DNA of 64,000 bases. Source: Oikopleura dioica. Taxonomy: Eukaryota > Animalia > Chordata. Both the position numbers and the translations under genes were made by a program. The notes under the pieces are model-generated. The model was not told where the DNA came from and did not search any database. It saw nothing but the letters and a program-made list of their open reading frames with translations. Positions 1 to 55,380 of this stretch are shown here, one piece after another; the stretch's first letter is position 1; the number at the start of each line of letters is the position of its first letter. The DNA is taken from contig OU015567.1 in assembly GCA_907165135.1 (NCBI GenBank), positions 744,001 to 808,000 on the forward strand. Reading direction: 5' to 3'.

Positions 1-1977
1 GAATTCCCAAAGCTCATCTGTGAGCTTGTTGTCGATTGATTGATGAGTTCTTCGTTCAATTCAGAATTCTCCGACGAGTTGAGCTCGACGATATTGCTAG
101 GGTGGGTTTTGAATTTAATCGGGCAATCTTGGTCCTGCTCTCTCCCTGATCTTGAAAACATAAACCAAACATATCATACATGTATGGATAGAGCTTTTCA
201 AGATCTAGCAACTCTGCATTGGAATTCCAAAAATATCAAATATAATCAGTTTTATCGGAGTTTTTCCTTCAAAACTGGGTTGCATTTTTGAAAATTGAAC
301 AGTGCGAGACATGAATTCAGATTAGATTTCAACATTTTTAACGCCTGAAAACCGGTAATTTTTGGCTGATTTGTTATTCAAATGCAGAGTTTATCAACCT
401 GTGGGAGATCGAAAAGGATCTGATTGTTAATTTTGGTGAAAACCGGCAATTCAGATAAAAATCCGTATGCAAAAACCGGGAATTTCTATAGATTTCGGAA
501 ATTCCAATGCAGAGTTTGTAGAGCTCAAAAAGCTCTTTCCAACCATGTGTCATATGTTGGAGGTTTATTAGAAAAGTTCGGAGCTACAGCCAAAGAAAGA
601 TTGCCCGATTAAATTCAAAACCCACCTAGGCGGCTGCTTTTTGAACAGAAACATGGGAAGCAAGCTGAGGAAAACGAAAACAGCGGCGATAAAGTATCCA
701 AGCCACCACTGACCGACCCATCTTGTATCGGCTGGGCTGACGGAAGGCTCTTGAAACGGATCTACCCAGCGGTTTTCGACTAAATAGAAGATAGAAAGGC
801 TGGTTTGATTGTAAAAATGCAGTAACTTGAACTACTCGGTCTTAATTGTGGAGTGTTTATGCAACAATTTCAATTGTTTCTAATTCAAGCGTTATCTTGA
901 TTTCGGGAAATTGTCGGAATAAAGTCTGCCGAGCCGTTAAAAATAATCGAATTCCAGTTTGTTGAATAGAAAAATTTGAGTAAACTGTTAACTCATTTTC
1001 AAGTAGACTATTTCTCCTGGGTTAACGAAGCTATCACACTATTTTTGGTAAATAATCGATTGTTATGCATTAAATATTTGTTACTCTCTTTCTTACGAAA
1101 TCGAGACGAAGTTATTAAAGAGAATCTCGTAATTCAGTTCGATTTGCATACCCCCCCCCCATTACCTTGTGAAGCAAGAACATAACCAGCTGCTGGTCCA
1201 ATCGCTCCAACAAGATAGACCACCGAAACATAAACAGGCGCAGATCTCACTGGAGCAGCGTCGTGGACATAAGTCGTCCCTAAAATCCAATAACAGTCGG
1301 GGCCTTCGCCGTTCTTTTACCTAAAGTGTAAATGGGACTTCCACCCATGCCAATGATCAAATTAGCGAGCAGAAAAATGAACATGTAAAGCGAGTTCTTT
1401 GGGCCGACGTTAAGACAGTCGTCTGGATTGAAAACCGAGTAGTTTGACTGGCACAGGTCGCCGTCGATGCTGTTTGGGTCCGACCCGCTGGGCTGGTACA
1501 GACCCGAAATCAGCTGCGGAAGGGTGAAGAGGAGGGAACCCAGGACGACGAGGAAGCCGCCTCCTGCCACCTAAAGAATGCGTTTTTAGGAAAATGTTCA
1601 AAAAAGAAGGAAACGAACCCATCTGGGACGATTGCCGCTCCCACCAAACCAAGAGACGAAAACGACGGTGCTTAAACTTCCAATATCGCCGGCGGAGATA
1701 ATCGTCCCGATTTCAGAAGATCTGAGGGAGTATCTTTGTTCTATCGAAGTTGAGACTCCAGCTGTGTAGCCAGAGCTAACCATCGACTGAAAAGAGAGTT
1801 GTCAAAACCCTAGAGGAATTTGAAGATTCTTACCTGGAAGAAAATATACATCGAAAAGCAAACCAAAAAGCCCTTCGCCGTAAAGAATATCCTCCTCAGC
1901 TTCTTGAAGGGAGCAAAACATCTGCAGCAAAGAAATCGTCGCCATTTTGATTCGCCTTTGCCGATATCTGACAGCAT
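1..1977 (-). CDS. Organic anion transporting polypeptide (OATP/SLCO family, SLCO4-like); N-terminal part, gene runs off the window start
   Basis: Spliced exons 1977-1834, 1786-1619, 1570-~1321, ~1280-1168, ~781-626 and 96-1 give MLSDIGKGESK...KGFLVCFSMYIFFQSMVSSGYTAGVSTSIEQRYSLRSSEIGTIISAGDIG...FVSWFGGSGNRPRW...GMGGSPIYTLGTTYVHD...GPAAGY...WVGQWWLGYF...LFKKQPP. These match OATP motifs (IExRY, SYFG, RPRW, YxD, GPAxGY, WVGAWWxGF). Confidence 0.92.
101..626. mobile_element. Non-autonomous TIR element (MITE) that forms an OATP intron; 30-bp TIR, 3-bp TSD TAG/CTA
   Basis: GGTGGGTTTTGAATTTAATCGGGCAATCTT at 101-130 and its exact reverse complement ending at 626; TAG at 98-100 and 627-629. Confidence 0.85.
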
Positions 1978-2208
1978 AACGCTCTGAAAACGAAAATATG
2001 AGAAACAGTTCAGTCACTGAACTTCAGTGGAAAATGATTCTAAAGACAGAGGGGTGGCTAAAGCCTGTTTTTAATGCATTTAGACAGTCTCGGTCTCATT
2101 TTTCTGAAGGTCTCGGTAAATATTCTTGAGGCGGTTTACTGTCTTGTTAAAATTTCAAAGATTCTCGAAGAAAAAAAAGAATCATCATTCATGAAGCTTC
2201 TTTTTGAC

Positions 2209-2945: not shown

Positions 2946-4800
2946 GCGATTTCTTCACAGAGAAGTCAAAACGGTGAGGGAATAAATCTTTTGTAGACAG
3001 CCAATAAAATCGATAAATGTACCCTTGCCAATTCTTAGAGATTCTTTTATATTCACAAAATCATTAATAAAAACGGGTCTTATTTTGAGGCTCTCTTGGG
3101 AAAAGGCAGTTTTATCCACGGTCAGAAGAGTGATTCTCCAGTGGAGAATGGCGGTGAATAAAGCATGAATTCAGCGGCTTTTCGTTTTTCAAAATCGAAA
3201 GCGAAAATAATCAAATATTTAAAATTGAGAAACTTGACTTGCCAAAACATCTCATTTTTTCAAACCTTCTATTTGTTAACTTTCTCTTTTTATGTTTTCT
3301 TGGAAAAAAGAAACGGCGCAAAAAAGAGCTTTGCTCGTTAAAAATGCTCTCAGATCTTGAAATAACTGCTCATCAATTTGCTGCTTTTGACCTTTCTTTT
3401 CCATTCAAAATTGGAGAAAAAAGATGTTTCTTTTTTAAATAAAAAAGATATAAGAAAGTGATTAATTGGCAATCGACGCGGCTGGAAGATGGGTCTGACG
3501 GAAACTCAACCTCATCACCTTAGTTTGGTCATTTCCGGTTCCAACTGGAACAGAAAAGTGCTTTTTTGGCCGCTTTTTTTTTGAAAATTTTGCCATTTCA
3601 AATTTCAAAAGTTATCAAAAATAAAAATTTGGACCAAATTTTTGGTCAATTTTTCGCAATAATTCTGAATTTTCAATTTTTTGGCCAATATTTTGATTAC
3701 AAGCAAAATTTCTAGATTTTCTTTGACTCCAAAATTCGACCAAAAAATTGACCATTTTTCGGTCGAATTCAAATTGTTCCAAATTGACCTAGATTTTCAC
3801 TTACGTCGCGATAAATTTTCTCTTCGTAACTTCTATTTAGATTCAGCTTTTTCTCTTTATAACTGTTTTGAGAGACAGTATTGTCGAAGTAAAAAGCACA
3901 CAAATGAGAAGCGAAAAAAAGTGATTGTTGTGTTTAGAGCTAGTTTCTCGTGGAAAGAGTATGAGCCCCTATACGGGGGCGAAAATGACGCGAAGAAGGT
4001 TGCTACTTGACATGGCCCCAGGGGAGAGAACGAGAGAGCCACTCGCTCAATAGAAATGACAGTAAGGTGTCAAAGGAGAAATTGCGACTAATTAAAGTTT
4101 TAGGAAGGCAATCGCAAATTAGAATGTTTCAGATTTTTAAAAAGTCATTCTGGAATTATACTTTTTCCAGAATAAAAAAAATTAATGAGAAAAAATTAGA
4201 TTTTCACAAAAAAAAGTTTTTAGGAAGATTTGCAGTTTATTATAAAATTTATTAAAAAATCATTTTTAATAAAAATTATTAATAAATTAACAGAAAAATA
4301 AAAATTATCAAATAAAAAATTACCTGTTCGGAACTTTCTGACTCTTCTCTAGAATCCCCCATTTCGGTCGATTTCTAGATTTTTTTTCGTTTATTTTTTT
4401 ATCCTCTCATTATTCCGTTTTTTGGACAAAAGAGAATTTCTCGGATTTCGTTTTTTCTCGCTCCGGCGATTTCTCAAGTCTTTTTTCAAATTTAGCCGAT
4501 TTTTGGAAAGTCGCCAAAATGCGCTCCGGGGCCAATGAGGTGCACTGCGCTGAAGATTTGAATTTCCGAAGATCGAGATTTTAGGGCAACTTGGGCGATG
4601 TAGAGCGGAAAATTGAAATTTCTTGAACTAAAGTGTGATTCGCCCGGTTTGGTTTTATTGGAAGAGGATGATGATGAGGTCGATCTGATTGACATTGACT
4701 CGCAATCGGAATAATTTCATTTGTAGCTTTTGTGATCTGCTGATTATTTTTCGGAAATTTTATTAACCAAAATGCGCTACAAAATTTTCTATATTCTATT

Positions 4801-10617: not shown

Positions 10618-12662
10618 ATGAAAAATGTATACAGAACGACTGGTTCTGTGCCATTGCCAGAGAGAGCCGACCGGAACCGCCCGTTTCAATTTGTTCCTCA
10701 ATCATCTGCCTCGTTGATTCAAAAAGCTTACGAGAAAAAACAGCGCATTCATGGCAACACAATCAAAAGAGAGCAAATTCTCAATGATGGACTTCGAAAA
10801 CAGTTGGAAGAACAAGTTCCAGTGATGAATCATGAAATCAACGAAGAGAACCAGTACCAAACGCCTCATGTGCATTTTCCGGAGTATGATACCAATCACG
10901 AATACCAAAATCTTCCGATGATTTTGGACTCCGAGAAGTCTTCAATGATTACTCCACCTCCAGGTTAGATAGAATTTTGGCGATCAAGGGAGTTTTGCAA
11001 ATGAAGATTTGAAAAACTATTTCTGGGGTGGCGTCAGGAACCGACAAAAAAATTTCAACAAATTTTGCGTGGGCGGCTACTCGGCTGCTGATTGGCCGGT
11101 TTGCCGAATCCAGGCTTCTGATTGGTTAAAAATTAACACGCAAAATTTGTCGAAATTTTTGTCGATTCCAGACACCTCCCCTATTTCTACGTAAAATCTC
11201 TTTTTTCAAAGTTTAACTGCCATTCTAGCATTCCATATCAATCAAGAATATTTGAGCCCAAATCAAGGACCTCCATCACCAGACCCTGAGCTTGAAGAAC
11301 TCAAAGCTCTTCTTCTTTCGAAGAAAAGACGACTTCAAGATGCCGAAACCCTCCTCGGCGAAGCGGAAGAACTCATCATTACTAGGTCTCTTTTTCAACG
11401 AAACACTCCTTTACGTTCTTTTTTAGGGATCGGCAAAAGACCAAGATCGAAAATCTCAACTTGACGTACAAGGAAATCGAAAATGCGAAGAAGAATCTCG
11501 ATGGAATTCGAAATATGACTTTGACGGTGAAAAAGGAGCGGCTCGACGCGCAGCTTGAGAACGAAGAACTCGCTGAATATTACAACTCTTTGGTTGACAA
11601 GAAATATGAAGCGGATAAGAAGATCAAGACATTGAGAAGAGCAACTGTGGCGGGGCCGGAAATGACAGAAGATACGGAGTCTGAGTTCAAGAAGCTTTTA
11701 AAAGAGAGAAAAGTGAGCTTTCTTTTATTAATTTTGGGAAACCATAAACATAGCTTTTGGCGGTCAAAATAAGGTTTTTTGGTGTAGAAAACCATGAAAA
11801 AACATAGTGATTGAAATCGTTTGGTGTCTTTCAATTCGTTGAACTTAAATTCCTAGGCAGAAAATGAAAAACTTCGCGAACGAATAAACCGCCGAAAAAA
11901 GGAGCTCACCCGTCGAAACCACAAGCTCGAAATCGCGAAGCAACAAAACGAAACTGCTCATAAGACGCACGACGAAATCAAGGACCAAGATGCGAAAATT
12001 ACCGCTGAGAAAACCGAGCAGATCCGAAAACTTGAGAATGAAGCAAACGCGCTGAGAACAAAAATTGATGGAATTGTGAACAATGATCAGGCGTTGATCA
12101 ATTTGAACACGAGAAAAGCGCAGTTGGAAGAAAATCATCGAGTCTTGATGGGAAGATTTGAGGAGGCTAATAAAGCCATCGGTAGGTCCATTTTTAAAAA
12201 ATATTATTCAGGAAAAGTTCAGATAAGCGACTGGAAGAAGGACCAAAAGTCGTCATCAATGATCCTTATTATAATGTGAGTGGGTAAATAACAACCTTTT
12301 TACTCTTACTCTCTTATGATATTCGATCGACCTTCCTTTAGAAATTCAATATTGATATTCAGAAATCTAATAATTATCCTTTTTTATATTCTTATCTAGA
12401 ATCTTCGGTTGCAAAAACAACTCAAAGACAAAGAAATCGCCAAGCTGGAAAAAGCAAAGCGGGAAATCAAATGGAAGGTAAGCCATTTTCTATCTCCTTT
12501 TACTCGTCAAATTTCTAGTACCACCAAGTTTGGTGCCAACTCAACGACGTGGACGAGTCGGATGATGAGCAAGATGTCGCCGTTGATCCTTCCGTCCTCA
12601 TTGTTCCGGAATCCGTCGCTTCTCATCGCCTCGGCTCATTCAAATCTACCGCCCGATTTTGA
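10618..12662 (+). CDS. Multi-exon coiled-coil protein of unknown function
   Basis: Successive ORF segments (10570-10968, 11252-, 11461-, ~11861-, 12076-, 12409-) rich in E/K/L heptads and flanked by GT/AG signals; final exon YHQVWCQLNDVDESDDEQ...TARF*. Confidence 0.65.
11025..11181. mobile_element. CCAAT-containing MITE (GGGG...CCCC termini) with TATTTCT TSD, intronic
   Basis: Long imperfect TIRs (...CGACAAAAA...ACAAATTTTGCGTG); TATTTCT at 11018-11024 and 11182-11188; further copies at 29915, 49189 and 55257. Confidence 0.8.
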
Positions 12663-17646: not shown

Positions 17647-18922
17647 TCTCTTTTTGCCGCTGGATTCTATCCGGTAAAGTCAGGTTGAAAAAATTGTTAC
17701 CGTAGAATATGCCCTTAGCGAATTTCTATTGCTTGTCTATTTTCTATTATTTTCGGTAGCAAGAGCCCCGGGCACTATCAAAGATACGCTTTCGATCGTA
17801 CACGCATCTCTTAAATTTTGAGCATCACGCAGAAGAAATTTTAACGAGGAGATTTTGATAAACAAAAGTTCATTTCATTTAGCACTGCTTAATTTTAGCA
17901 GCAGAAAATAAGGAGGGAAATAGGGGAAAAAGAGGATTTCGAAGAGGGAAAGAGTGTTACTTTGGAGTAGACTTTTTGTGCTTGTAATTGGAGTAAGCGG
18001 AAAGAGTGTCACGGAAAGAGCAGCAGATTCAGAAGCTTTAATAAAAAGCCGCATCGTGGCTTTTTTTAATTACAAATGTATAATTCGGAATTTCGAATCT
18101 CCATTTTTTTACACTTTTGTCTTGAGACTTTCAGACATGGATTCAGATTTTGATTGGGTTATATAATATATCGAAATGAGCATGACCAGGACGAGGTCTA
18201 TCAAATTTACCTTTGGAAGGAAAAAAGAGTTTCTGATAATAATGAAATTATTAACGCCAAATTTTATTTTTTCATTTGCAATTAGCAGCTAAAAAACATA
18301 TGACACTGAGTAAAATAACATCATTAAAAAAATGAGAATTGATTTGTTGGAATCTATAAATGTATGATATACAGTGTTTATTGAATGCTAACTGGCTTAT
18401 TGTGGGCTTTTTAGATGCTTCACATGAGAAAAATTTTCGATGCTTACAACAATGTTTTAGTCAGAAAAACGTTCACAAGAATTCTACAATTTCTTTTCGC
18501 TTGATATTGTATTTCTTGTGATTTTTGTGATAAAGAAAATAGGAAATCGAATTTAACCTTGCGACGACAAACCCAAATTTCACCCGCCGACGAAAATTGT
18601 GCCATATTTGGCACATGGACTTTAACGCCATCTTTTAATAATAACCTGAATCATAACCTTGATAATCAATAACCTGCCAAAACTGGACGAAAAATGACGG
18701 GCTGAAAATCAAAGTTTCCATATTTAAGCGATGAGTCTGATTTCAGATTCTTGAAGGCGATTAAGCCATGCCGACCATGATTATTCTTGATGATAAAATT
18801 AAGCTTTTTCCGGTGGGCTCCGATTTTGATTAATTTTATGGACACTCCATCAGATTAGTGTGTTTTATTGATTTTTATAAGAAGCCGACTAATTTGAACT
18901 TTTATGGTCAGATTCTGAAATA

Positions 18923-19621
18923 CCGTGGTTTTCCATTTTAAGAGCGTTTTTTGGATGATAGGCCTCGCTCAAATCGCTCTTAGATTGGAAATTTTTCAAT
19001 CAAGGTAGGATGACAGTGGGATTTTTAATTTTTTGTGACAACCTTGCGTTCTGCAATTACAAAAAAAGATCCGATGTTTTCTGGACGATTTCATCGTCGA
19101 TGATGATCATCTGAACATCAACGAAGAAGATCTAGTGATTCACTAGTAGTGAACAAAGCGAACGAAATCTTCATGAACATAAATCCAACAATCTTCAAGC
19201 GCTCTTGGATCAATACTGGGCTGATCAAGGAGGAAGAATTCGAAGGAGCTGTTGAAGATTTTGAAGACTTGGATGTTTTGGAAAGTGTGCTGGAGAAAGA
19301 AGACGAGGAAGAGCTGGTCGAGCATTTTCTGGCGCTTCAAATCGATGAAACACGAGCCGCGACTCCGATGAAGATTGAACAGGAACCTCAAGTTCAAGAG
19401 ATAGAGACACTGCAAAGCCTTCGACTTCAAAATGGCCCGAAAAGCAGTCAAAGATTACAAAATTTTTTAATAAATGATTCACTGTAAGTCTGAAAATTTT
19501 TTGATTTTTAATAAAGATCTTCGAAACCGCTCTTAAACTGGAATTTTGGCGGATGACAACATTTTCAAAAAATAGGCAAAAACGCTCTTAAAGTGGGCGC
19601 TCTTAAAATGGAAAACCACGG
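18923..19621 (+). mobile_element. Internally deleted Tc1/mariner-superfamily (pogo-like) element, 24-bp perfect TIR, TA TSD
   Basis: TA|CCGTGGTTTTCCATTTTAAGAGCG...CGCTCTTAAAATGGAAAACCACGG|TA; subterminal CGCTCTTA repeats; internal ORF 19149-19487 (NINPTIFKRSWINTGLI plus acidic tail) resembles the end of pogo-type transposases. Confidence 0.8.
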
Positions 19622-19886
19622 TAGTGAGAATTTATCCGGGATTAAAATGTTGACCATCAGGGCTGGGAAATCGCCATTTAAGTTTCATCTCTGTAATGTT
19701 ACTGACAGCGCTAGGCGCCATTGGTCTGAGATGTTATTTGAGTTTTGATTTTTTCTTGTTCTCAGTTGATTTCATTTCGAATCAATTTTTAAACCGACTA
19801 TCAATATGGAAAGTGATTCGGAACTCTGGGCGACAGAATTAAACACCCCAGAGAATTTGTATTCTCGAAAATATGACCATTTTCAC

Positions 19887-20829: not shown

Positions 20830-20868
20830 CTAAATATCAAAGTTTGTATTCATGAAGCGTTGAATTAA

Positions 20869-21095
20869 GGACCCCCCCGTCAACTTTTTTCGAAAAATCG
20901 ATTTTCGGAATTTCAAAATTTTGACCCCGGAAATGGATTTTACAGGTCAAAAAACGATTTTGAGGCTTCATTTTTTGGGGGTCTATCTCGACTCTAACAC
21001 CCTCAAAATCGCGTTTGAAAATTGGACTTTTCGCGGAAAAATGACGAAAAAGTCCAAATTTTGATTTTTTTGAGAAAAAGTTGACCGGGGGGTCC
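20869..21095. mobile_element. Non-autonomous TTAA-target element with GG...CC termini (Kolobok-like)
   Basis: TTAA|GGACCCCCCCGTCAACTTTTT...AAAAAGTTGACCGGGGGGTCC|TTAA; second copy in opposite orientation at 54170-54513. Confidence 0.75.
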
Positions 21096-21483
21096 TTAAG
21101 CATTGGAATTGGCAGTGAAAGATTGTAAACCAGACATGGAACTGTCAAAATCTGGCCCAGCAAAACCGAATTCAATTCGCTCTATCGCAGATTGGTAAGA
21201 TTTTTCCATTGCTACTTCCACTGTCTCTGGTATGTCCATGCATTATTTCAGCGTCAATTATCCTTGATAGAACATGAGGCGCGCATTGCCCAGACCGATT
21301 TCGCTTTTGGAATTCAAATCCACGATTGCTCCGACAAAAAGACCGGATGTTTTACGAAGACCACGTTGCGGAATCAGGCTCTGTTTACGATCCATACAAG
21401 TGGGATCGTAAAGAGGCGCCAAAGCCGATTATAAAGTCCAACTACACGATCAGCGATTGTGGCTATTAATCTGATCCGTCGAG

Positions 21484-22390: not shown

Positions 22391-22772
22391 TAACATACCC
22401 CCTCCCTAAATTCGCCCGCTTTTCGTGGTACATTTCCCAAAATTCGCTCTCCCTAATTTTTTTAATCTGCCCCCAATTTCGCTTCTCCTGATTTTTCACC
22501 GGGCCCCCAAATTCGCTCTGCAGATTGTCTAAAAACGCCTAAACACAATTGAATATGGATAAATTGCAAAAAAAATCTATTATCAGGCTAGTATTTCTCT
22601 CCACCGAGACAACGACGCGTGCTAATCCTTCAATTTTAGTTTTGAGAGCGAATTTGTGGGCCCGGTAAAAAGTTAGGAGAAGCGAAATTGGGGGCAGATG
22701 AAAAAATTAGATGGAGCGAATTTTGGGAAATGTACCACGAAAAGCGGGCGAATTTTGGGAGGGGGTACGTTA
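22391..22772. mobile_element. Foldback MITE with imperfect TIRs of about 120 bp and TA-flanked ends
   Basis: CCCCCTCCCTAAATTCGCCCGCTTTTCGTGGTACATTTCCCAAAATTCGCTC... mirrored by ...GAGCGAATTTTGGGAAATGTACCACGAAAAGCGGGCGAATTTTGGGAGGGGG. Confidence 0.85.
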
Positions 22773-24078: not shown

Positions 24079-25162
24079 TATCAGATTTTGAAGCTGATTC
24101 TTTAACCGCAATAAAAATCAAAATTAGAGCATTGGGTGGTGGTGCAAGCGTGGAGGCGCGTGCGCCTCAGGAGCTTTTGGAGTAAATCATCAAAATCAAT
24201 GTTATTTTAAAGAAATTTTTTATCTCTAGGTATTTTAATATGGAGATAAATAATTTATTATTTATTTTATCCGTTCAAATAATATTATATTCAATTTCAT
24301 AAGAAACAAGTATTTTTCGACATCAACAACTGTCAATTTCATTATTTACTTGACATGAATGAGATTTATTCCGGAAATCCCTGGATTTATGTATCGAACC
24401 ACTTGTCACCTTATTCAGAAAGGTTCGAACCTAACACGGGGCGTGATTTCCTGCCGCGCTGTTACTCTCAGTCAGAGGGGTTGCAAAAGAAAGCTCAGCC
24501 TCTGAGCTTTCAGTAGAGCTCATAACATCGGGCTGCCCTTTTGTCTAGCGCCCTCAAGTGGCGCTAAAAGATGACCTTGAAGATCGGAAAAGTCGGAAAC
24601 TTCCGGTTTTGAATTTTAAACTCACTAGTTGTATTTTTAAAACAATAATAAACAATTATCAAAGTCAAAAAAGACTGAACCGCGGTTGAACCGAGTGGTC
24701 AACCGGGTGGTCTATCGCGGTTGGACTCAAGAAATCTTCTAGAACATAGAAATATGGGTATTTTTTGACGGGAAATTGAATAAACCATGAAAAAAAGGAT
24801 GGACCATAACTAATGGTATACATCGGCGCGGTGCTGCTTCCTCGATCAACGCGTCGCCAGAACCTATTTTTTACAACGGCAGAAAATCTGAACGGAGCAA
24901 GATTTTGTCTAGGTTCAAAAAGATTACAAATCCTTGAAGTTTTTTATATTTCTTATTGCGAATATCAAAAAAATGTAATCGAGGAGTTATCTTGGAATCG
25001 CCAGTTTTCTTCTTGTGACATGTTCTCCTTCATTTTTCATCCAAAATTTTATGAAACTTGAATGCTCTTGTCGACAATGCTCTGCTTTTCAATTCCTCTT
25101 ATACAGATTTTTCGTTAAGGGGGTCCCCAACGATTTTTCTGAAAATGGCCATTTATATATAC

Positions 25163-25860
25163 GGGTGGCGGGCGGCTTCGTTCGCAAAGGCCATTTTGCG
25201 AACGGCGTTCGCAAATTACGAGCGGTGTTCGCAAAATCGAAAAAATTTTGGCCGAAAATCGTTCACGCCTTTTTTCAAAATGTGTCCCAGCGGTAAAGAA
25301 AGACTGCTCCTGCCAAGCCGATGAGTAGGTACCCGCTGAAAAAAATAGGTGGTCGATATGTTATCCCTTTTTGAACGAAACTCTGTGACTATAGTAAATA
25401 AGTATCTAGAAGTTCAATTCCGAGGTCAAAAGTTCGAAAAAAGTTCATCTTGGGGTCACCCGAGGTCATCAAAGTTCGAAAAATTGAGATTTTCTAATAA
25501 TACTATTTGTGTATTAAAAGAATGTTTAATGATAGTTTCATTCCCAAAAAATTTTTAGGCTCTATTAGGCTTACAAATTACAGTCGAAAAACGTCAATTT
25601 ACAATGAAAATTCGATCACGTGCAAAATTTTCTCGATAAAAATCTTTTTTCTTTGCTCAAAAGTTAGTGTCAACTATCATTTGCTAGATTTGCAACTTGA
25701 AAGTGCTTAATTAAAGGGGTTGAAAATGGCCCTTTTGACTTCAGCGGGTACCTAGCCAATGAGTTCTCTACCAGAAAATGCGCGAAACGCACACTCACGG
25801 GAAGTTTTTATTTCATTCCGAACGGCGTTCGCAAATTGCGAACGAAGCCGCCCTACACCC
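25163..25860. mobile_element. Inverted-repeat element with GGGTG..GGGCGGCTTCGTTCGCAA arms
   Basis: Imperfect arms of about 25 bp at 25163 and 25836-25860; internal AACGGCGTTCGCAAATT repeats; no TSD seen. Confidence 0.5.
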
Positions 25861-27442
25861 GCCGATACAGACTTATATTTTTCACTAATTTTTTTACGTG
25901 CAAGTAGATCAAATCTAGATCTAGTGAAGCCTGTCTCAGATTTTTTTAAAACCAACCATATCTCGCGCAAAGGCGCCGAGAAGGAGAGCATCTCACAGAA
26001 AATCGCGTTTTTGGCCATTTTTTTCACCTGAGATTACTCCAAAAATTTAGATTACAAAAAATTTTTTCCTGCTGTTTCTGAATGCTCTAGCACTAATCTA
26101 GTGAAGCGGTTCTTCGTTTTTTCGATTTCCCAAAAATGATTATGTAACAAAGACGATCAAAAAATGTACGATTTTGGAATTTTCAACCCTGTGAATTGCC
26201 CTCTGGGCATAACCCAGACCCATATTTTCGGGCATTTACATAAAGCTTAGCTCACAGCATTTCTAAAAATGTGCTATTCTTGAATTTTGATGAAAATGCA
26301 GAAAAATTGGTCACTTCAACTTGAAGTCTTCAAGTATCAAAGGACACTTTTTTCTACAAGAATTGAAAAAGCTAGAGGCCTTTTTGCAGCTTTTGCATAA
26401 GGAATTTAGATCCGAAGAGAAAAAATCTTATTCCCAAAATCGTTAAAATCCATTCAAGCAGCACTATTATTAAGTTTCAGTGACAGATAACCAAACTGTA
26501 AAGAAAATCATAACTTCTGTGAATTTTATGGTTAAAAATATCAGAAGAGACGATTAACTATCCGCTCACATTGTTGAATTTCTCTTTTGAGACACTACAA
26601 TGTTGATCACATTCAAATTTATCTATAAAAATATGATAAGAAATCTTTACAAAGAATAACCTCTCAAAAACTAGACGAAAAATGAAGGGCCGAAAATCAA
26701 AGTTTCCGCCCACCTTAATTTACCGATGAAATCAAGAAATGAATTAAAAATTCAGAGAGCATTGTGCTAGTTTTTGTCAAAAACAAAAGCAATAAAAATA
26801 AAATTTCAGACAAAGAGCATACCGTGGTTTTCCATTTTAAGGGATCCTCCCCTGTTTTTTCATTTCCTGCCGTGCAAAGTTTTGTTCAATAATAGAATGC
26901 ACGTAACGAGGCAGTCGCCATCAACAATGGAGCAGACTTTATTTCAAAATAATGCTTTCCATTTTCTAAAGCGCTACGCAATCTGCATTCCATCTTTCTA
27001 ATCTTAATGAATAATAAGACTTAGACGCAAAGATGCTCATACCTGGTGGATCTTCGTCGTAGAGATCCTAAAGATTAGACAGATCGGAACACGGTCATTT
27101 TTCGGGGTAAAATACTGAAGAGCTAACAAATGCTTTATATAATATAAAAGAGAGCAATTTTTTTATAATTCGGAAGTTGAAAGAATTAAACCTTGTTTTT
27201 ATTCACCCGATTTTCGAGAGGGAATTTTCAATTGAATTTTGTCGGTTTGAAGATCGCAAAATAAAAACATTAAAAATTCATAATGCATATTTTGAGCGAT
27301 GTTTATGATGCTTGACGCTAGAAAAAGTCGCGCATGCAATGGTCAGAGCAAGATAAGACTACATCTCGCGCGCCCTCCGTTTCGTATTATAAATCTGAAT
27401 CATAACCGAAACCATAAAAAAATTACTAAAAAGAGATCTACG

Positions 27443-41266: not shown

Positions 41267-44200
41267 TCAAACTTCAACATCTCCACGGTGCAGCAGCGGT
41301 TGTCGGAAATTCGAAGACGAGTTCAAATTATGAGACGAGATATCGTTCTGGTTCGGTGGTCTGTACTCGAATTCGCCTCTTGAAGGATCGAAGCCTGGGT
41401 AGTTTCCATTGTTTGAAAGCTTTGGGATGGTTCCAGTGGGAGTGTAGACGCTTCGTTGTCCCAAATGGTTCGGGTTGACAATCATCTGCTGCCCCATTTG
41501 CTGGGCCGGAATCATGTGCGTCGGGTAGTGAAACTGAGGTGGAGGATATTGCATTTGCTGGAGCGTGCTTTGATCCGCCATCGATCCCTTCGGAAGCTGC
41601 GAGAGTTGCGATTCATCCGTCGTGTAAGTCATTTGAACACAGTCGGGCACGGGTCGAAGAGTGTGCTGGAAATCAGCGCGAGAATGGAGTGGAGCAGAAC
41701 TCCAGAAGAACTCGGCACCGTGTGATTTTTCGCCGTGATCGCGGAGGCCGAAGTTGGATAGGACGCTTTTGCAGCCACGCTGAGCCTGAAAAGAGGAGAT
41801 TTAGGATCGTTGAAATCAAGGAAGAGTCATTTTTCCAAAAATTTCTTATTTTAAAATTGTCCATCTTGCCAATTCTTACCTTGATATTGCAAAGGCAATG
41901 ATAAATAAAGCTGGCCACAGCATGGAAAATCGCAATCGCAGCCAGAAAGATCGCGACAGTTTCATCCCCGTTTCCTTCTCCTTGAGCATAGTAGAGCAGA
42001 ATCAATCCCCATTCGCAGGACAGCAGCACTGTCAGCAAGCCAACCCAAAGCAGCGTGGATCTAAAAGAAGCGGTTTTTTATTTTGGATATTATCAATGAC
42101 AATATTGAGCCGCGAAAGAGGGGAAGCGCGATCGGATACGCGCAAGTTGTTACACGCATAATCAGTTGTAAACTACACGTGAGCGAGAGAGTCAGAATAT
42201 CGATTTTTGTACAAATTCACCAGCAGCGGCATGGATTTCTAAAAACGTGGGTCCAAAGAGAGAAAATTTTAGATCTGATTTATCTTATTCTGAACATGAC
42301 ACGTGACTTGGTCGAATTGATTTGGAGCGGAGGTATTAAGTGGCACTTGTGATTAGCCAGAAAAATTATATGAATAGGCAATGACTGGAATTAAGGGGGT
42401 AGACGTCGTTAAAGACGATTTTCAAGCTGATTTAAAGTGTTGGCACGAAAACCTGTGTAGAAAACCTGAGTCAGGGAACGCAAAAAGAGACTTTCATAAA
42501 AGATTTTTTCGGACCCTAACTCAGGTTTTCTACACAGGCTCTGACCCAAATTCTTAGTTTTGGGTCGAAAAAATCACTGGAAAGAGCCACGTTCTGAGTG
42601 AAATCGAAATTCCCCGAAATCTGTTTCGGACTCATTCCTCCTCTATCCGGTTATTTTCGGCTCAGTCTCTGCCCGGTCATTTTCTCCTCTCTCTCTCTCT
42701 TTAGAAATCCCTGGCCTGCAGCCAGCGAGCCTGAGTGTCCGTCTAACCCAAAAGCTCGTCATGCAAAAACAAAATTATAAAAAAAATTCTCAGATGTGAA
42801 AACATAAACAGAATTTTTCGCCGATAAGAAAAATTTCGGCTCGATTTCGCAACGTGCTCTAGAGCTGCTCTCAAGTTGAGAGTCTCAACGCGGCAATTAA
42901 GTCTTGAGAGCCGCGTTTTTTTAATAAAAATTCTGCCCAAAAAAATGGAGAGTCGAGTTGTCTTAGAGTTGCGATAAGAAGCTCTACGTCCGGGCTTGTG
43001 TGTGTTGTCACCCGCTGCGCGTTATCAGCGCAAGGAGACGCGCGAAATTGTAACGTTCTCGATCTCTGATCGCACTCGCTGAGGTGTAATTTTGAGTTTT
43101 AGAGTTTCGTTTGAGAGGTCTTATAAAATGACAGCTAGCTTCTTTTGGCGAAGGGGGCGAACTTACCGAATTTGTTGAACATGGAGCTGGTACTCCGGAT
43201 TGTCTCGCAGTCGTGTCGCGCTGAAGAGGATCAGGAGCATTGAAAGTGAGGCGAGAATCACGGCTGGACCCGCAGCTGACCAAGTGAATGAGATTGACTC
43301 GCCGGCGAAGCATCTGAAAGGAAAAAATTTTAGGTTTTTATATTTTTGCTTTCTAGCTTACGATATTAATTCATTTTCTAAAGAGCTTTTAATTCACTTT
43401 ATTTCTAGACAAAAAAGTCTAATTTGATACTGTATGAATGCTTTTATGGTTTCTTGGATTCCTGAGAAGCAAAATCAGCGTCAGAATACTGCACCATAAA
43501 GATTTAAAGGCTCTCCAAATTTCGAATTGGCGAACTGCCACTCTTCAATTGAGCGCAGAAAATTTAAGAGAGTAATATAAAGTATCAACAAAAATTTAAC
43601 TCGTTCCCATTTCCGCGCGTTATTCATCATAAATGACGACTTTTCTTTCTCGTTTTCGAGAATCTGGGCAGCGGATCAAAAAGCACTGACCTTTCGCACG
43701 AGTCAGTGGATGTGGTCAGGCTAAACAACATTTTCGAAAATGAGGCGAATTTTTGGCTTCTTTTTGAAAATGGAGAAATTTACGCCACAGTGGTTGACAA
43801 AGGGGAAAGTGTTGTGAATATAAGCATAAATATATATTGAATTCGGATAATTGATATGGCTAAAATAGACGAGCGGAGGGGAGAATGATTCGATTTTTTT
43901 TCTTGAGTCATGTGAAAATAAAATTAACGGGCTGGAGACCGTTAAAATCACTTTTGCGGCTTCGATTTTGACTTGGCTTATTATTGAAGATCCTTCAGAC
44001 CCTGACTCAGGTTTTCTACACAGGTTTTCGAGCCATGTTTTTAACATTGTGAACCAAAGATTAGATGGCTCTGATTTTGAGGCTGAAAGTTTTCAAAAGC
44101 ATAGTTTTCTAAAGCAGACAAAAAAAGAAGCCTGAAATTAACAATTAGAATGAGCTAACTTTGAAAATGTGGGAAATGGGCGACCGCGCGGCGGCTCAAT

Positions 44201-47200: not shown

Positions 47201-50200
47201 TTCCGCTGTCAAGATCTCTTGGATTCTCTTGTCGAAGCTGGTCGACGAATTCCAAGATTTTCTTCAAGTCCCAAGCGCGGAGGCTGCTTTTGTTTTCCAC
47301 CACGGATTTGAGGAGGTCTTCAGCGGTTGTTTGAGCGACATTCGATCTGCTGATTCGAGCGGTTGTTTTTTGAACCCATGGAGAGAGGCATTGGCTCATG
47401 TCCGGCTCGGAAGTCCAATAAGGTTGGGAATTCGACCCTGAGCATCGGAGAATTGCCTTTCCGGGAGATTCGTAGCAAGAGGTTGCGCTTGAAGCGCCAT
47501 ATTCTGCCGCGGAAAATTGAAGGCCCCAAAAGGTCATTGGTGGACAGCTTTTCGGGGAGCGTGTTGTTCTTGGCGTTTTCTTCGTCGTAGTCGTTGTGGT
47601 GGTGGTTGTTGGTTTGAGAATGTCTCGCGGCTGGAAACGGAGCTGGTAGGTGATGGCGATTCCAGAGCTCCAGACTTGGAGAGAACGGACTTTTGGGTCA
47701 TATTTGACACTTGTTGTCTGCGCAGGAAAGCCTTGGAGTTCGAGCCGACTCACGATCGACTCATCCACGTGGTTCCCGTTGACAGTATCGAACATAAAGA
47801 GCAGCCGATTCGTATCAGCCTCGATTGCGTACAAAATGCCACACGTCATCCAAGCCTCAGCAACCATCGTCTTTTCGAAACGCGTGTTGAAGGTCTTCAA
47901 GACTTTGAGACTTGACGGATCGAGCTGAGAAAGGACGATTTGACCGTTGTTGTTTTCCGTTGCGTAGATGGCCCAGAGCCCGGATTCATCCACGGCGAGG
48001 TCGATGTCTGTGTTGCGATCGATGGAGTAAGGAGAGGTGTCGTAGTAGTTGGCATCGGGAAGCTCCACGGTCCGGGATTCAAAGCGCCGCTCCAGATCGT
48101 ACATGACGATCTAGAAGAAAAATTTGAGAATTGTTTGACTTTTCAGAAAAAAAATTCCCGTGACAAAAAATAAAATAAACAAGGTCCATCTTTATCGAAA
48201 AATTGTCTTGAGCTAATCTCAAAGTTTTGTTTAATCCGTGCCAAGAGGTGCTCCTGCCCGCGTCACATTCCGCGAACCATCCTCTCAAGTGCTCGCGGTT
48301 AGAGGGGGATAGCCTTGGTAAGAGGATAGCTGCACACGAGCTAAGGAGAGGGAAGATTACCAAACTTGTGCTGGATTATTTGGGAGGCGTAACCGGTTGA
48401 GATGTACTTGGAGGACCGCGGATGGTATTCATCCGTGAAGCGAACACTTGGAAAGATAATTGGGCGGAAAATTAGCGGTGGTGCTTTTTAAGTGCGATCA
48501 AGTTCCAAAATTGCGCCTCGCTCCTCATTCTCATTTTCCCGATTTTCTTCAAAGAAAAATGAGTCGATTAATAATTGACCAGATTCTGACCGGCTTCCTC
48601 AGAAGTTGTTTAGTACTTGTGAAAAATGACGGCCATCGGCGATCATAAATTGATCATCACCAATTTATGATTGCCAATCATTTTTCTGATTAATCATTTT
48701 CTTCCTCGCATAACAGGTTCTTTTCGCCGAAACTGCCCGAACAAGATAGGATATCAAGAACCACCAAATGGGTGATTGAGATATCCAGGCCGCAGCATAA
48801 GGCAGCATTGAGGAGTTATGTTTGGGAAACATAATTTTTATCAACGAAAAATATCACTTTGAGCGAGGCCTGTTTTGGCACTTGTCCCGGCAGTTGATGA
48901 TGTGGCTGCTCCGAGAAGCTATCTATCAAGGAGCTCTTCTTCTTGCTACTGGTTTTATAGGAGACTTGAAAATGGAAACAGAAAAGCCCGTGAAATTTTA
49001 AAATTTTCTTGAGAAGCGGCTTTTCGGTTTTAACGAGGTAGATTGGCAGGTATATGACTTGGACCGTGTCCTCCATAAAAAAAGTTTAAAGGGTACCGGA
49101 GACATATTTAGCTTGACTTTTATTGGGTGATGAAAGGATTGGTGATTGGATGGGGGACCTGCTTTGCTTGATTTAAGGGTGTCAACACGGGATGGTGTCT
49201 AGACCCGACAAAAAATTTCGACAAATTTTGCGTGGGCGGCTATTCGGCTGCTGATTGGCCGGTTTTCTGAATTCAGTTTTCTGATTGGTTGAAAATTTCC
49301 ACGCAAAATTTGTCGAAATTTTTTTCGGCTCCAGACGCCTCCCCATTAAGGGTGTCAACAGGGGTAGAAGCTTACCTGTCTTGATTGTCGCTTATTGTAG
49401 TAAAGCTTCCTATCTCTAACAACAAATCCAGTTCCATCCGCGCGCGTGTCCAGCCTAAAAAGATGGTCAACTCGGTAAAAGTGGAATTTTTTCTATTCTT
49501 GTTTTTGCGGAGAGGATTCAATCAAGACTTTTGCATGTATTGGTTGCATATTTTCTACCTGTAGTGGGTTTCTTGGCTGCCCTGAACGAGACTCTCCAAG
49601 CTGCGGAATTCTTTCAACTCGGTGGCTCCGGACTGATCCCACGGGAGGAAGTACACGCGGCTTTCGCTGTCCAAAGGATCGGTCGCCCAGGCTCCCTGAA
49701 GAAAATGAGTTATTCAACGACTTTTTAGTAGTTGCAAGTTCATGGTTGAAAAATTCCAGCGCTTTTTTAGGATTTGGGAAAATTGAAAATTGGGAAAGGC
49801 TTTTGATGCATATTTGAATATCCATGAATATTTGAAAATGATATATAAATAGAATATAGTATCGCTTTTTTGTTTCGGCTCAAAATAAGCCATATGTTCT
49901 GGCTCAGCGCCTAATCATCCGGATTTCCAATTTCGATACATGAGTTGAGAGTGTCGAAATTTAGTTCTACTTGATTCAATTTGCTATGTTCCAAAACTTC
50001 CAGCGCCAAAATTAGTCATCAAAAATGGTCTGAGAACGAATCTTTCAAATGATCTCGAAAATTAATCACCAGCTTCGCAATTTTAAAGTTGATCTTTCTC
50101 GGCCAGAGCCAAGAGGTTAATAGGTGCACTGGGTACTCGATAAAGAAAAACAGAGACGCACTTTGAAGTCTCAAGCCCTTTTTTCCTTATCAAAAGAAAA

Positions 50201-55179: not shown

Positions 55180-55380
55180 TGGGCTCGGAAACCTGTGTAA
55201 AACCCTGAGCTTTTCTTTCCGATCCTGACTCAGGTTTCAACGCAGGATTCCAAGGGGACAAAAAATCCCGACAAATTTTGGGTGGAATTTTTCAACAAAT
55301 CAGAAGCCTGGATTCGGCAAACCGGCCAATCAGCAGCCAAGCAGCCGCCCACGCAAAATTTGTCGAGTTTTTTTTGGTCG
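55180..55380. mobile_element. Adjacent partial TGACTCA-MITE (55180-55248) and CCAAT-MITE (55257-55380)
   Basis: GGCTCGGAAACCTGTGT...CCTGACTCAGGTTTCAACGCAGG, then CGACAAATTTTG...CCGGCCAATCAGCAGCC...CACGCAAAATTTGTCG. Confidence 0.7.

Follow-up and report, generated by a model that had tools for sequence, protein, structure and literature searches.

The birth of an intron is rarely observable in animals, and most documented introners come from protists and fungi. Introners are intron-generating DNA transposons (Huff, Zilberman and Roy 2016; Gozashti et al. 2022, PMC9860276; Gozashti et al. 2025, PMC12130899). Those bounded by terminal inverted repeats (TIRs) and target-site duplications (TSDs), which co-opt a splice site derived from the duplication, are well documented in algae, dinoflagellates and other organisms, and TIR elements dominate the classified introner cases (PMC9860276, PMC12130899). 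The first-pass annotation of the DNA described here likewise states that TIR elements with TSD-derived splice sites make introns in some algae. It also gave MITE-derived introns as reported in O. dioica, which the papers examined credit to Fritillaria borealis instead; in that species the MITE-derived introns mostly have non-canonical ends (Henriet 2019, via PMC11282704). For Oikopleura itself, the supplement of PMC9860276 lists three small introner families in an Oikopleura TARA MAG, with 5–14 genic copies of ~200 nt and TIR/TSD entered as undetermined, and the trait table of this 2022 survey codes Oikopleura_dioica as introner-positive.

The window analysed here, a 64,000-nucleotide stretch of O. 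dioica DNA, begins within an OATP/SLCO gene on the minus strand, whose coding sequence is interrupted at positions 97–625 by what is probably a new intron, made of a TIR element. Exons 1–4 (1977–1834, 1786–1619, 1570–1321 and 1279–1166, together spanning 1166–1977 on the minus strand) are defined by a GT-AG gene model and by Pfam. Exon 5 (626–779, minus strand), reading ENRWVDP...FLFKKQPP, covers the WVGxWWLG/TM6 region, and the first part of exon 6 (1–96, minus strand), reading SNIVELNSS...SFGN, is cut off by the start of the window, beyond which the gene continues. Introns 1–3 are GT-AG introns of 47, 48 and 41 nt, and intron 4, also GT-AG, is 386 nt long (1165–780). The short introns, together with matches in Tara Oceans/ENA marine metagenomes and in a plankton metatranscriptome, suit a larvacean such as Oikopleura. 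Exons 2–5 match the Pfam profile PF03137 collinearly at profile positions 14–68, 70–153, 155–190 and 195–240 (E = 4.7e-12 for exon 5), with exon scores of 27–55 bits that each exceed the gathering cut-off of 25.8, confirming that the host sequence is an OATP coding exon, as first annotated. With 97–625 removed, the six-exon join encodes 308 amino acids without a stop and is open to the window edge; only with this removal is there an intact 308-residue product with collinear PF03137 matches.

A contig from a plankton metatranscriptome (X1) is identical to the window over 1708–1789 and runs on into exon 1; it joins exons 1 and 2, so the OATP gene is transcribed and its intron 1 is spliced. No confirmed relative emerged when JGI metagenomes were scanned for the exon 5 peptide, an exact-product look-up of the exon-2 ORF returned no record, and Rfam applied to window positions 1–2000 gave only a chance-level snoRNA match.

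The element lies directly after the ...WVGQWWLGY...LPMFLFKKQPP segment of the OATP. On the plus strand the order is ...ATATTGC-TAG-[GGTGGGTTTT...AAAACCCACC]-TAG-GCGGCTG, in which the outer brackets enclose the 526-bp element (101–626, without assigned strand), present as a single copy within the window; a longer reading of its termini on this strand gives TAG [GGTGGGTTTTGAATTT ... AAATTCAAAACCCACC] TAG. The left TIR (101–130, plus strand), which begins GGTGGG, and the right TIR (597–626, minus strand) are each 30 nt long and match one another with 0 mismatches. This 30-nt terminal sequence has exactly two exact matches in the 64 kb, which are the two arms themselves, against 0 expected in 100 shuffles, and the 526-bp element with perfect 30-bp TIRs that had been proposed is thus far beyond chance. 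No further copy of the 30-mer occurs within the 64-kb window, even allowing 3 mismatches, and no second copy of the element was found there. The inverted arms reach 53 nt at 79%, a second inverted pair is nested inside them (168–234 / 492–558), and the foldback-rich element as a whole has a self-complementarity of 65%. The ORFs that lie wholly inside it are at most 62 aa long (longest 59–62 aa), and the element therefore cannot encode a transposase. The 24-nt TIR core had 0 matches in JGI metagenome contigs, and an exact-product look-up of the element ORF returned no record.

Copies of TAG flank the element at 98–100 (CTA in gene sense) and 627–629, as read from the flanks; the empty-site contigs described below carry one copy, as TCG. 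Of the 3-bp TSD first annotated, the TAG/TAG flanks are present, but the duplication could equally be 2 or 4 bp long. Both G100 and C626 are assignable to either the element or the duplication, which allows duplications of TA (element 100–626), TAG (101–626) or CTAG (101–625), and the same empty site follows from all three. The TIRs, the TSD, the lack of a transposase ORF, the multiple copies and the presence/absence polymorphism found here are those of a MITE-like, non-autonomous TIR DNA transposon.

In gene sense, the boundaries of the predicted 529-nt, phase-2 intron (97–625, minus strand) read TAG|GTGGGT...CCCACCCTAG|C. The donor GT (625–624) is formed by nucleotides 2–3 of the TIR, and the acceptor AG (98–97) by the last duplicated base and the next exonic base; because the TIR starts G|GTGGGT and the duplicated CTA precedes an exonic G, the pre-mRNA has both a donor and an acceptor. 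Joining 626 to 96 produces ...FLFKKQPP-SNIVELNSS... through the codons CCG CCT AGC AAT, with the frame open. At the level of sequence, both the origin of the splice sites and the restoration of the FKKQPP-SNIVEL frame are as the first-pass annotation described them: the ends of the element match those of the predicted intron, and its removal restores an uninterrupted coding sequence. Read against the canonical U1 sequence, every donor position from −2 to +6 can form a pair with the U1 5′ end, provided that two pairs of the G-U type are allowed. With a TIR that starts GGT, an exact GT-AG fit depends on just two flank positions, A followed by G, and would arise by chance in about 1 of 16 cases, or more often if CTAG is a preferred target; taken alone, the fit is weak evidence, suggestive and not compelling. 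Splice-site weight matrices built on the window's short GT..AG intervals flanked by ORFs were flat, false positives dominating the candidate set.

The empty site, which the first reading had proposed to look for in other Oikopleura populations or cryptic species, was found in other samples and lineages. Reads were mapped to the window from two runs labelled ‘DNA?’ (a guessed kind), X29 bearing the same species label and X30 a different one, which contain only 43–49% of the sampled words of window 1–1300. In both, a contig runs directly from position 98 to 629, the two being separated by a single C (...ATATTGCT-C-GGCGGCTG...), at a depth of 100 in X29 and 109 in X30, equal to that of the single-copy exons and introns nearby. 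These contigs are genomic DNA and not cDNA, since the same runs hold introns 2, 3 and 4 of the OATP gene. In gene sense, the empty allele reads CCG CCG AGC and the predicted spliced window allele CCG CCT AGC, both encoding Pro-Pro-Ser. A T in the wobble position of the proline codon, which gives TA/CTAG at the target, is confined to the filled haplotype, and its presence in both copies of the duplication makes it older than the insertion.

More distant relatives gave the same result. A query with exon 3 retrieved a 146-aa metagenome ORF on a 7.5-kb JGI contig (L001), which is the orthologous OATP locus of a diverged larvacean lineage, with 74–84% nucleotide identity in exons; an ENA assembly contains the same region (L002). 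Exons 5 and 6 form one exon in L001 (5714–5971), where the site reads CCG CCA AGC, and the predicted spliced window sequence aligns with it over 250 nt with no gap, with amino acid differences at 8 of 51 positions upstream of the site and 0 of 31 downstream. Six larvacean-like metagenome ORFs (P0004–P0009), with 55–77% identity to the L001 query, are also uninterrupted across the site (...LFLFKK.PP......SENSELNEELIN...) and break only after ...SI(T/K)G, at the next conserved donor. From the empty sites and the contiguous exon in all relatives examined, it follows that the uninterrupted exon is ancestral and the 529-nt interruption derived. The intron is absent at the orthologous position in X29, X30, L001/L002 and P0004–P0009 alike, and by these comparisons the insertion is derived, lineage-specific and young; its recent origin, supposed from the outset, is borne out by the empty relatives, the perfect TIRs and a young multicopy family.

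Other features of the OATP gene vary or are conserved between these sequences. Intron 2 (48 nt, 1571–1618; ...RPRW|VAGGG...) is missing in L001 (4830–4840), where exons 2 and 3 are fused in one ORF (P0003); the gene thereby offers a second case of an intron present in one lineage and absent from another, here without TIRs. Intron 1 of L001 (4217–4667) is ~450 nt long, versus 47 nt in the window, and holds a 326-bp element with 35-nt TIRs at 94% (4261–4295 / 4552–4586), which is a different MITE, unrelated to the window element, that expands an existing intron. The exon 6 loop peptide SNIVELNSSENSELNEELINQSTTSSQMSFGN (window 1–96) is identical at 31 of 31 residues in L001 (5868–5963) despite 84% nucleotide identity, and the ENSELNEELIN core is present in all six other metagenome orthologues; on this sequence comparison, the acidic, Ser-rich cytoplasmic loop motif of the OATP is unexpectedly constrained. 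A run of ten C residues at 1147–1156 (ten G on the gene strand), 10–19 nt downstream of the intron 4 donor (1165–1164), varies in length and in substitutions between X29 and X30.

We favour, with a probability of roughly 0.6, the reading that a young non-autonomous transposon in the OATP exon is removed by the spliceosome as an exact GT-AG intron, both predicted splice sites probably being used. A cut-and-paste DNA transposon of this kind would have entered the OATP/SLCO codons just after the TM6 sequence FLFKKQPP, in a target haplotype whose proline codon CCT provided CTAG at the insertion site. Its perfect TIRs would present G|GTGGGT at the 5′ end and ...CCCACC at the 3′ end whichever its orientation, placing a U1-compatible donor (TAG|GUGGGU) at the second base of the element and, precisely 529 nt further on, a pyrimidine-rich acceptor (CCCACCCUAG|), the AG of which would be completed by the duplication and the flank. 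Removal of element nucleotides 2–526 together with CTAG would return the pre-insertion mRNA, CCG CCT AGC AAT; the insertion would thus have no phenotype and would be retained as a new phase-2 intron, as the introner mechanism has it. The 386-nt neighbouring intron supports the intron reading in that long introns exist in this gene. Against it, the insertion is too recent for decay to be visible even if the allele were an unspliced null.

Such a null or hypomorphic allele would result if a recent, deleterious exonic insertion were spliced inefficiently or not at all, truncating the protein after TM6. Without removal of the element, read-through meets a stop 25 codons into it (...KKQPPRWVLNLIGQSFFGCSSELF*; ORF 568–663). 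The RNA coverage consists of three reads of 90–95% similarity at 1–60, from the X5 bulk RNA, and the X1 contig at 1708–1789, with 97–780, and hence the 626|96 junction, uncovered. The insertion is absent, apparently homozygously, from X29 and X30, and its perfect TIRs mark it as very young, as this explanation would have it. The predicted intron RNA forms a strong hairpin (−188.9 kcal/mol, z = −10.9 versus shuffles) in which the donor is sequestered; the modelled fold pairs it with the 3′ arm in a 29-bp duplex, which could hinder U1 unless recognition is co-transcriptional. OATPs form multigene families in animals, and loss of one member may then be tolerable. Against these points, canonical splice sites stand precisely at the frame-restoring positions, and Oikopleura is scored as introner-bearing in PMC9860276; we consider a null allele unlikely, if still a serious contender.

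Other or mixed splice sites, such as a cryptic acceptor 12 nt downstream (...GTCGAG|CTC) or partial retention, would instead make the element an imperfect intron that alters some transcripts. The last ten bases of the predicted intron are pyrimidine-rich, but the tract is C-rich, versus T-rich in the four neighbouring introns, and introners that add or delete codons are on record (PMC9860276). Only the predicted pair of sites, by contrast, restores the sequence conserved in all relatives, which makes such usage quite improbable. An old intron later filled by a transposon, for which only the general frequency of transposons in introns would speak (as in the TIR element in intron 1 of L001), or an assembly artefact, is effectively refuted by the empty sites: the exon is uninterrupted in all relatives examined, the interval consists of the element and one copy of the duplication and nothing else, and the empty and filled sequences differ exactly as a target duplication predicts.

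The transposon that would form the new OATP intron belongs to a wider family. Summed read depth inside the element is 4–20× that of the flanks in X29 and X30, and element pieces differ from the window by 1 mismatch per 102, 163 and 210 nt (about 1% at most); the unique DNA of these samples differs from it by ~2–7%. Contigs of both samples exit the element at 626–634 and at 95 into unrelated sequence, which represents other insertions. Depth and divergence of the reads together indicate that the family is multicopy and has recently been active. Other copies have right flanks beginning TCAGC, TAATC, TAGGCTTTT and TAGGCGGCATCG; a left flank with the ending ...AAATGCTAG was also recovered. Three of five right flanks have TAGGC in common with the OATP locus, more than expected by chance, and two left flanks end TGCTAG. 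Flanks of other copies match the OATP locus before diverging from it, over TGCTAG on the left and TAGGC / TAGGCGGC on the right, and this sharing suggests an extended, GC-rich target-site preference. Should both X29 loose ends, left and right, come from a single copy, the empty site of that copy, too, would be ...CCG CCT AGC A..., with the frame open.

A broader reading, which we put forward tentatively and hold to be doubtful as it stands, is that of a currently active, sequence-targeted introner family in a chordate, most exonic insertions of which would be exact GT-AG introns from the start, their presence or absence segregating between populations or cryptic species. Whichever way the element lies, its TIR would bring a donor with it, and the acceptor AG would come from a preferred, GC-rich target resembling ...GCCGCC|TAG|CA. 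If real, such a family would allow intron birth to be measured as it happens in an animal, and would explain some of the intron turnover for which Oikopleura is notorious.

Membership in PIF/Harbinger, suggested by the first-pass annotation, is at most putative. PIF/Harbinger elements typically have a 3-bp TWA duplication, and their autonomous partner encodes a DDE transposase and a Myb-like protein. With the Tourist-like MITEs of this superfamily, the window element shares its short, non-autonomous form, its G-rich TIR ends and a possible 3-bp duplication starting with T. It differs from them in its duplication, which at the OATP locus is TAG and not TWA and is ambiguous at 2–4 bp in length; the flanks of other copies begin TCA, TAA and TAG. 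No transposase was found within the 64-kb window, in which the only ORFs above 220 aa are an olfactomedin-domain protein and an unassigned 262-aa ORF. Other elements in the window comprise a 703-bp TIR element with perfect 26-nt TIRs (18921–19623), a 235-bp element with TTAA at the beginning and end of its TIR arms (20865–21099), a 382-bp foldback (22391–22772), further TIR/foldback elements (25162–25861 and 42432–44044) and a three-copy hairpin family of ~115 bp (11048–11160, 49210–49324 and 55260–55374). Among 11 other TIR pairs of the window screened for exon-restoring excision, none lies in an evident coding exon, and excision of the other TIR/foldback elements in the window restores no obvious ORF.

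At the OATP locus, the state before insertion (empty, in two samples and a diverged lineage) and the state after it (filled, with GT-AG ends) are both in hand, in a conserved chordate-lineage gene. If the predicted splicing is true, the locus provides, in an animal that can be cultured in the laboratory, a clean and polymorphic case of intron gain through transposition that can be dated; if the insertion is unspliced, it is merely a null allele. The kind of event is already known from introners and from the MITE introns of Fritillaria, and what is new here is the TIR/TSD anatomy together with directly observed empty sites. The element resembles an ordinary polymorphic exonic transposon insertion in being recent, missing from other samples and situated in a coding exon that it interrupts, and differs in having canonical splice sites at the exact frame-restoring positions.

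With described introners it has in common a non-autonomous TIR/TSD element whose ends are the intron ends, one splice site coming from the element and the other from the duplication and flank; splicing would not alter the length of the mRNA, the host lives in water, and relatives lack the element at the orthologous site. It differs from them in that one genic copy was inspected, in the window, and that its intron status is predicted from sequence. At 526 bp, it is longer than the members of the Oikopleura MAG families, of ~200 nt (PMC9860276). The MITE introns of Fritillaria borealis (Henriet et al. 2019, as summarised in PMC11282704) are likewise those of a larvacean, bounded by TIRs and TSDs and found at species-specific positions, with hairpin ends that bring the splice sites together. 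The Fritillaria introns are mostly non-canonical (AG-AC and AG-AT) and need a modified spliceosome, whereas the candidate intron in the window has canonical GT-AG ends.
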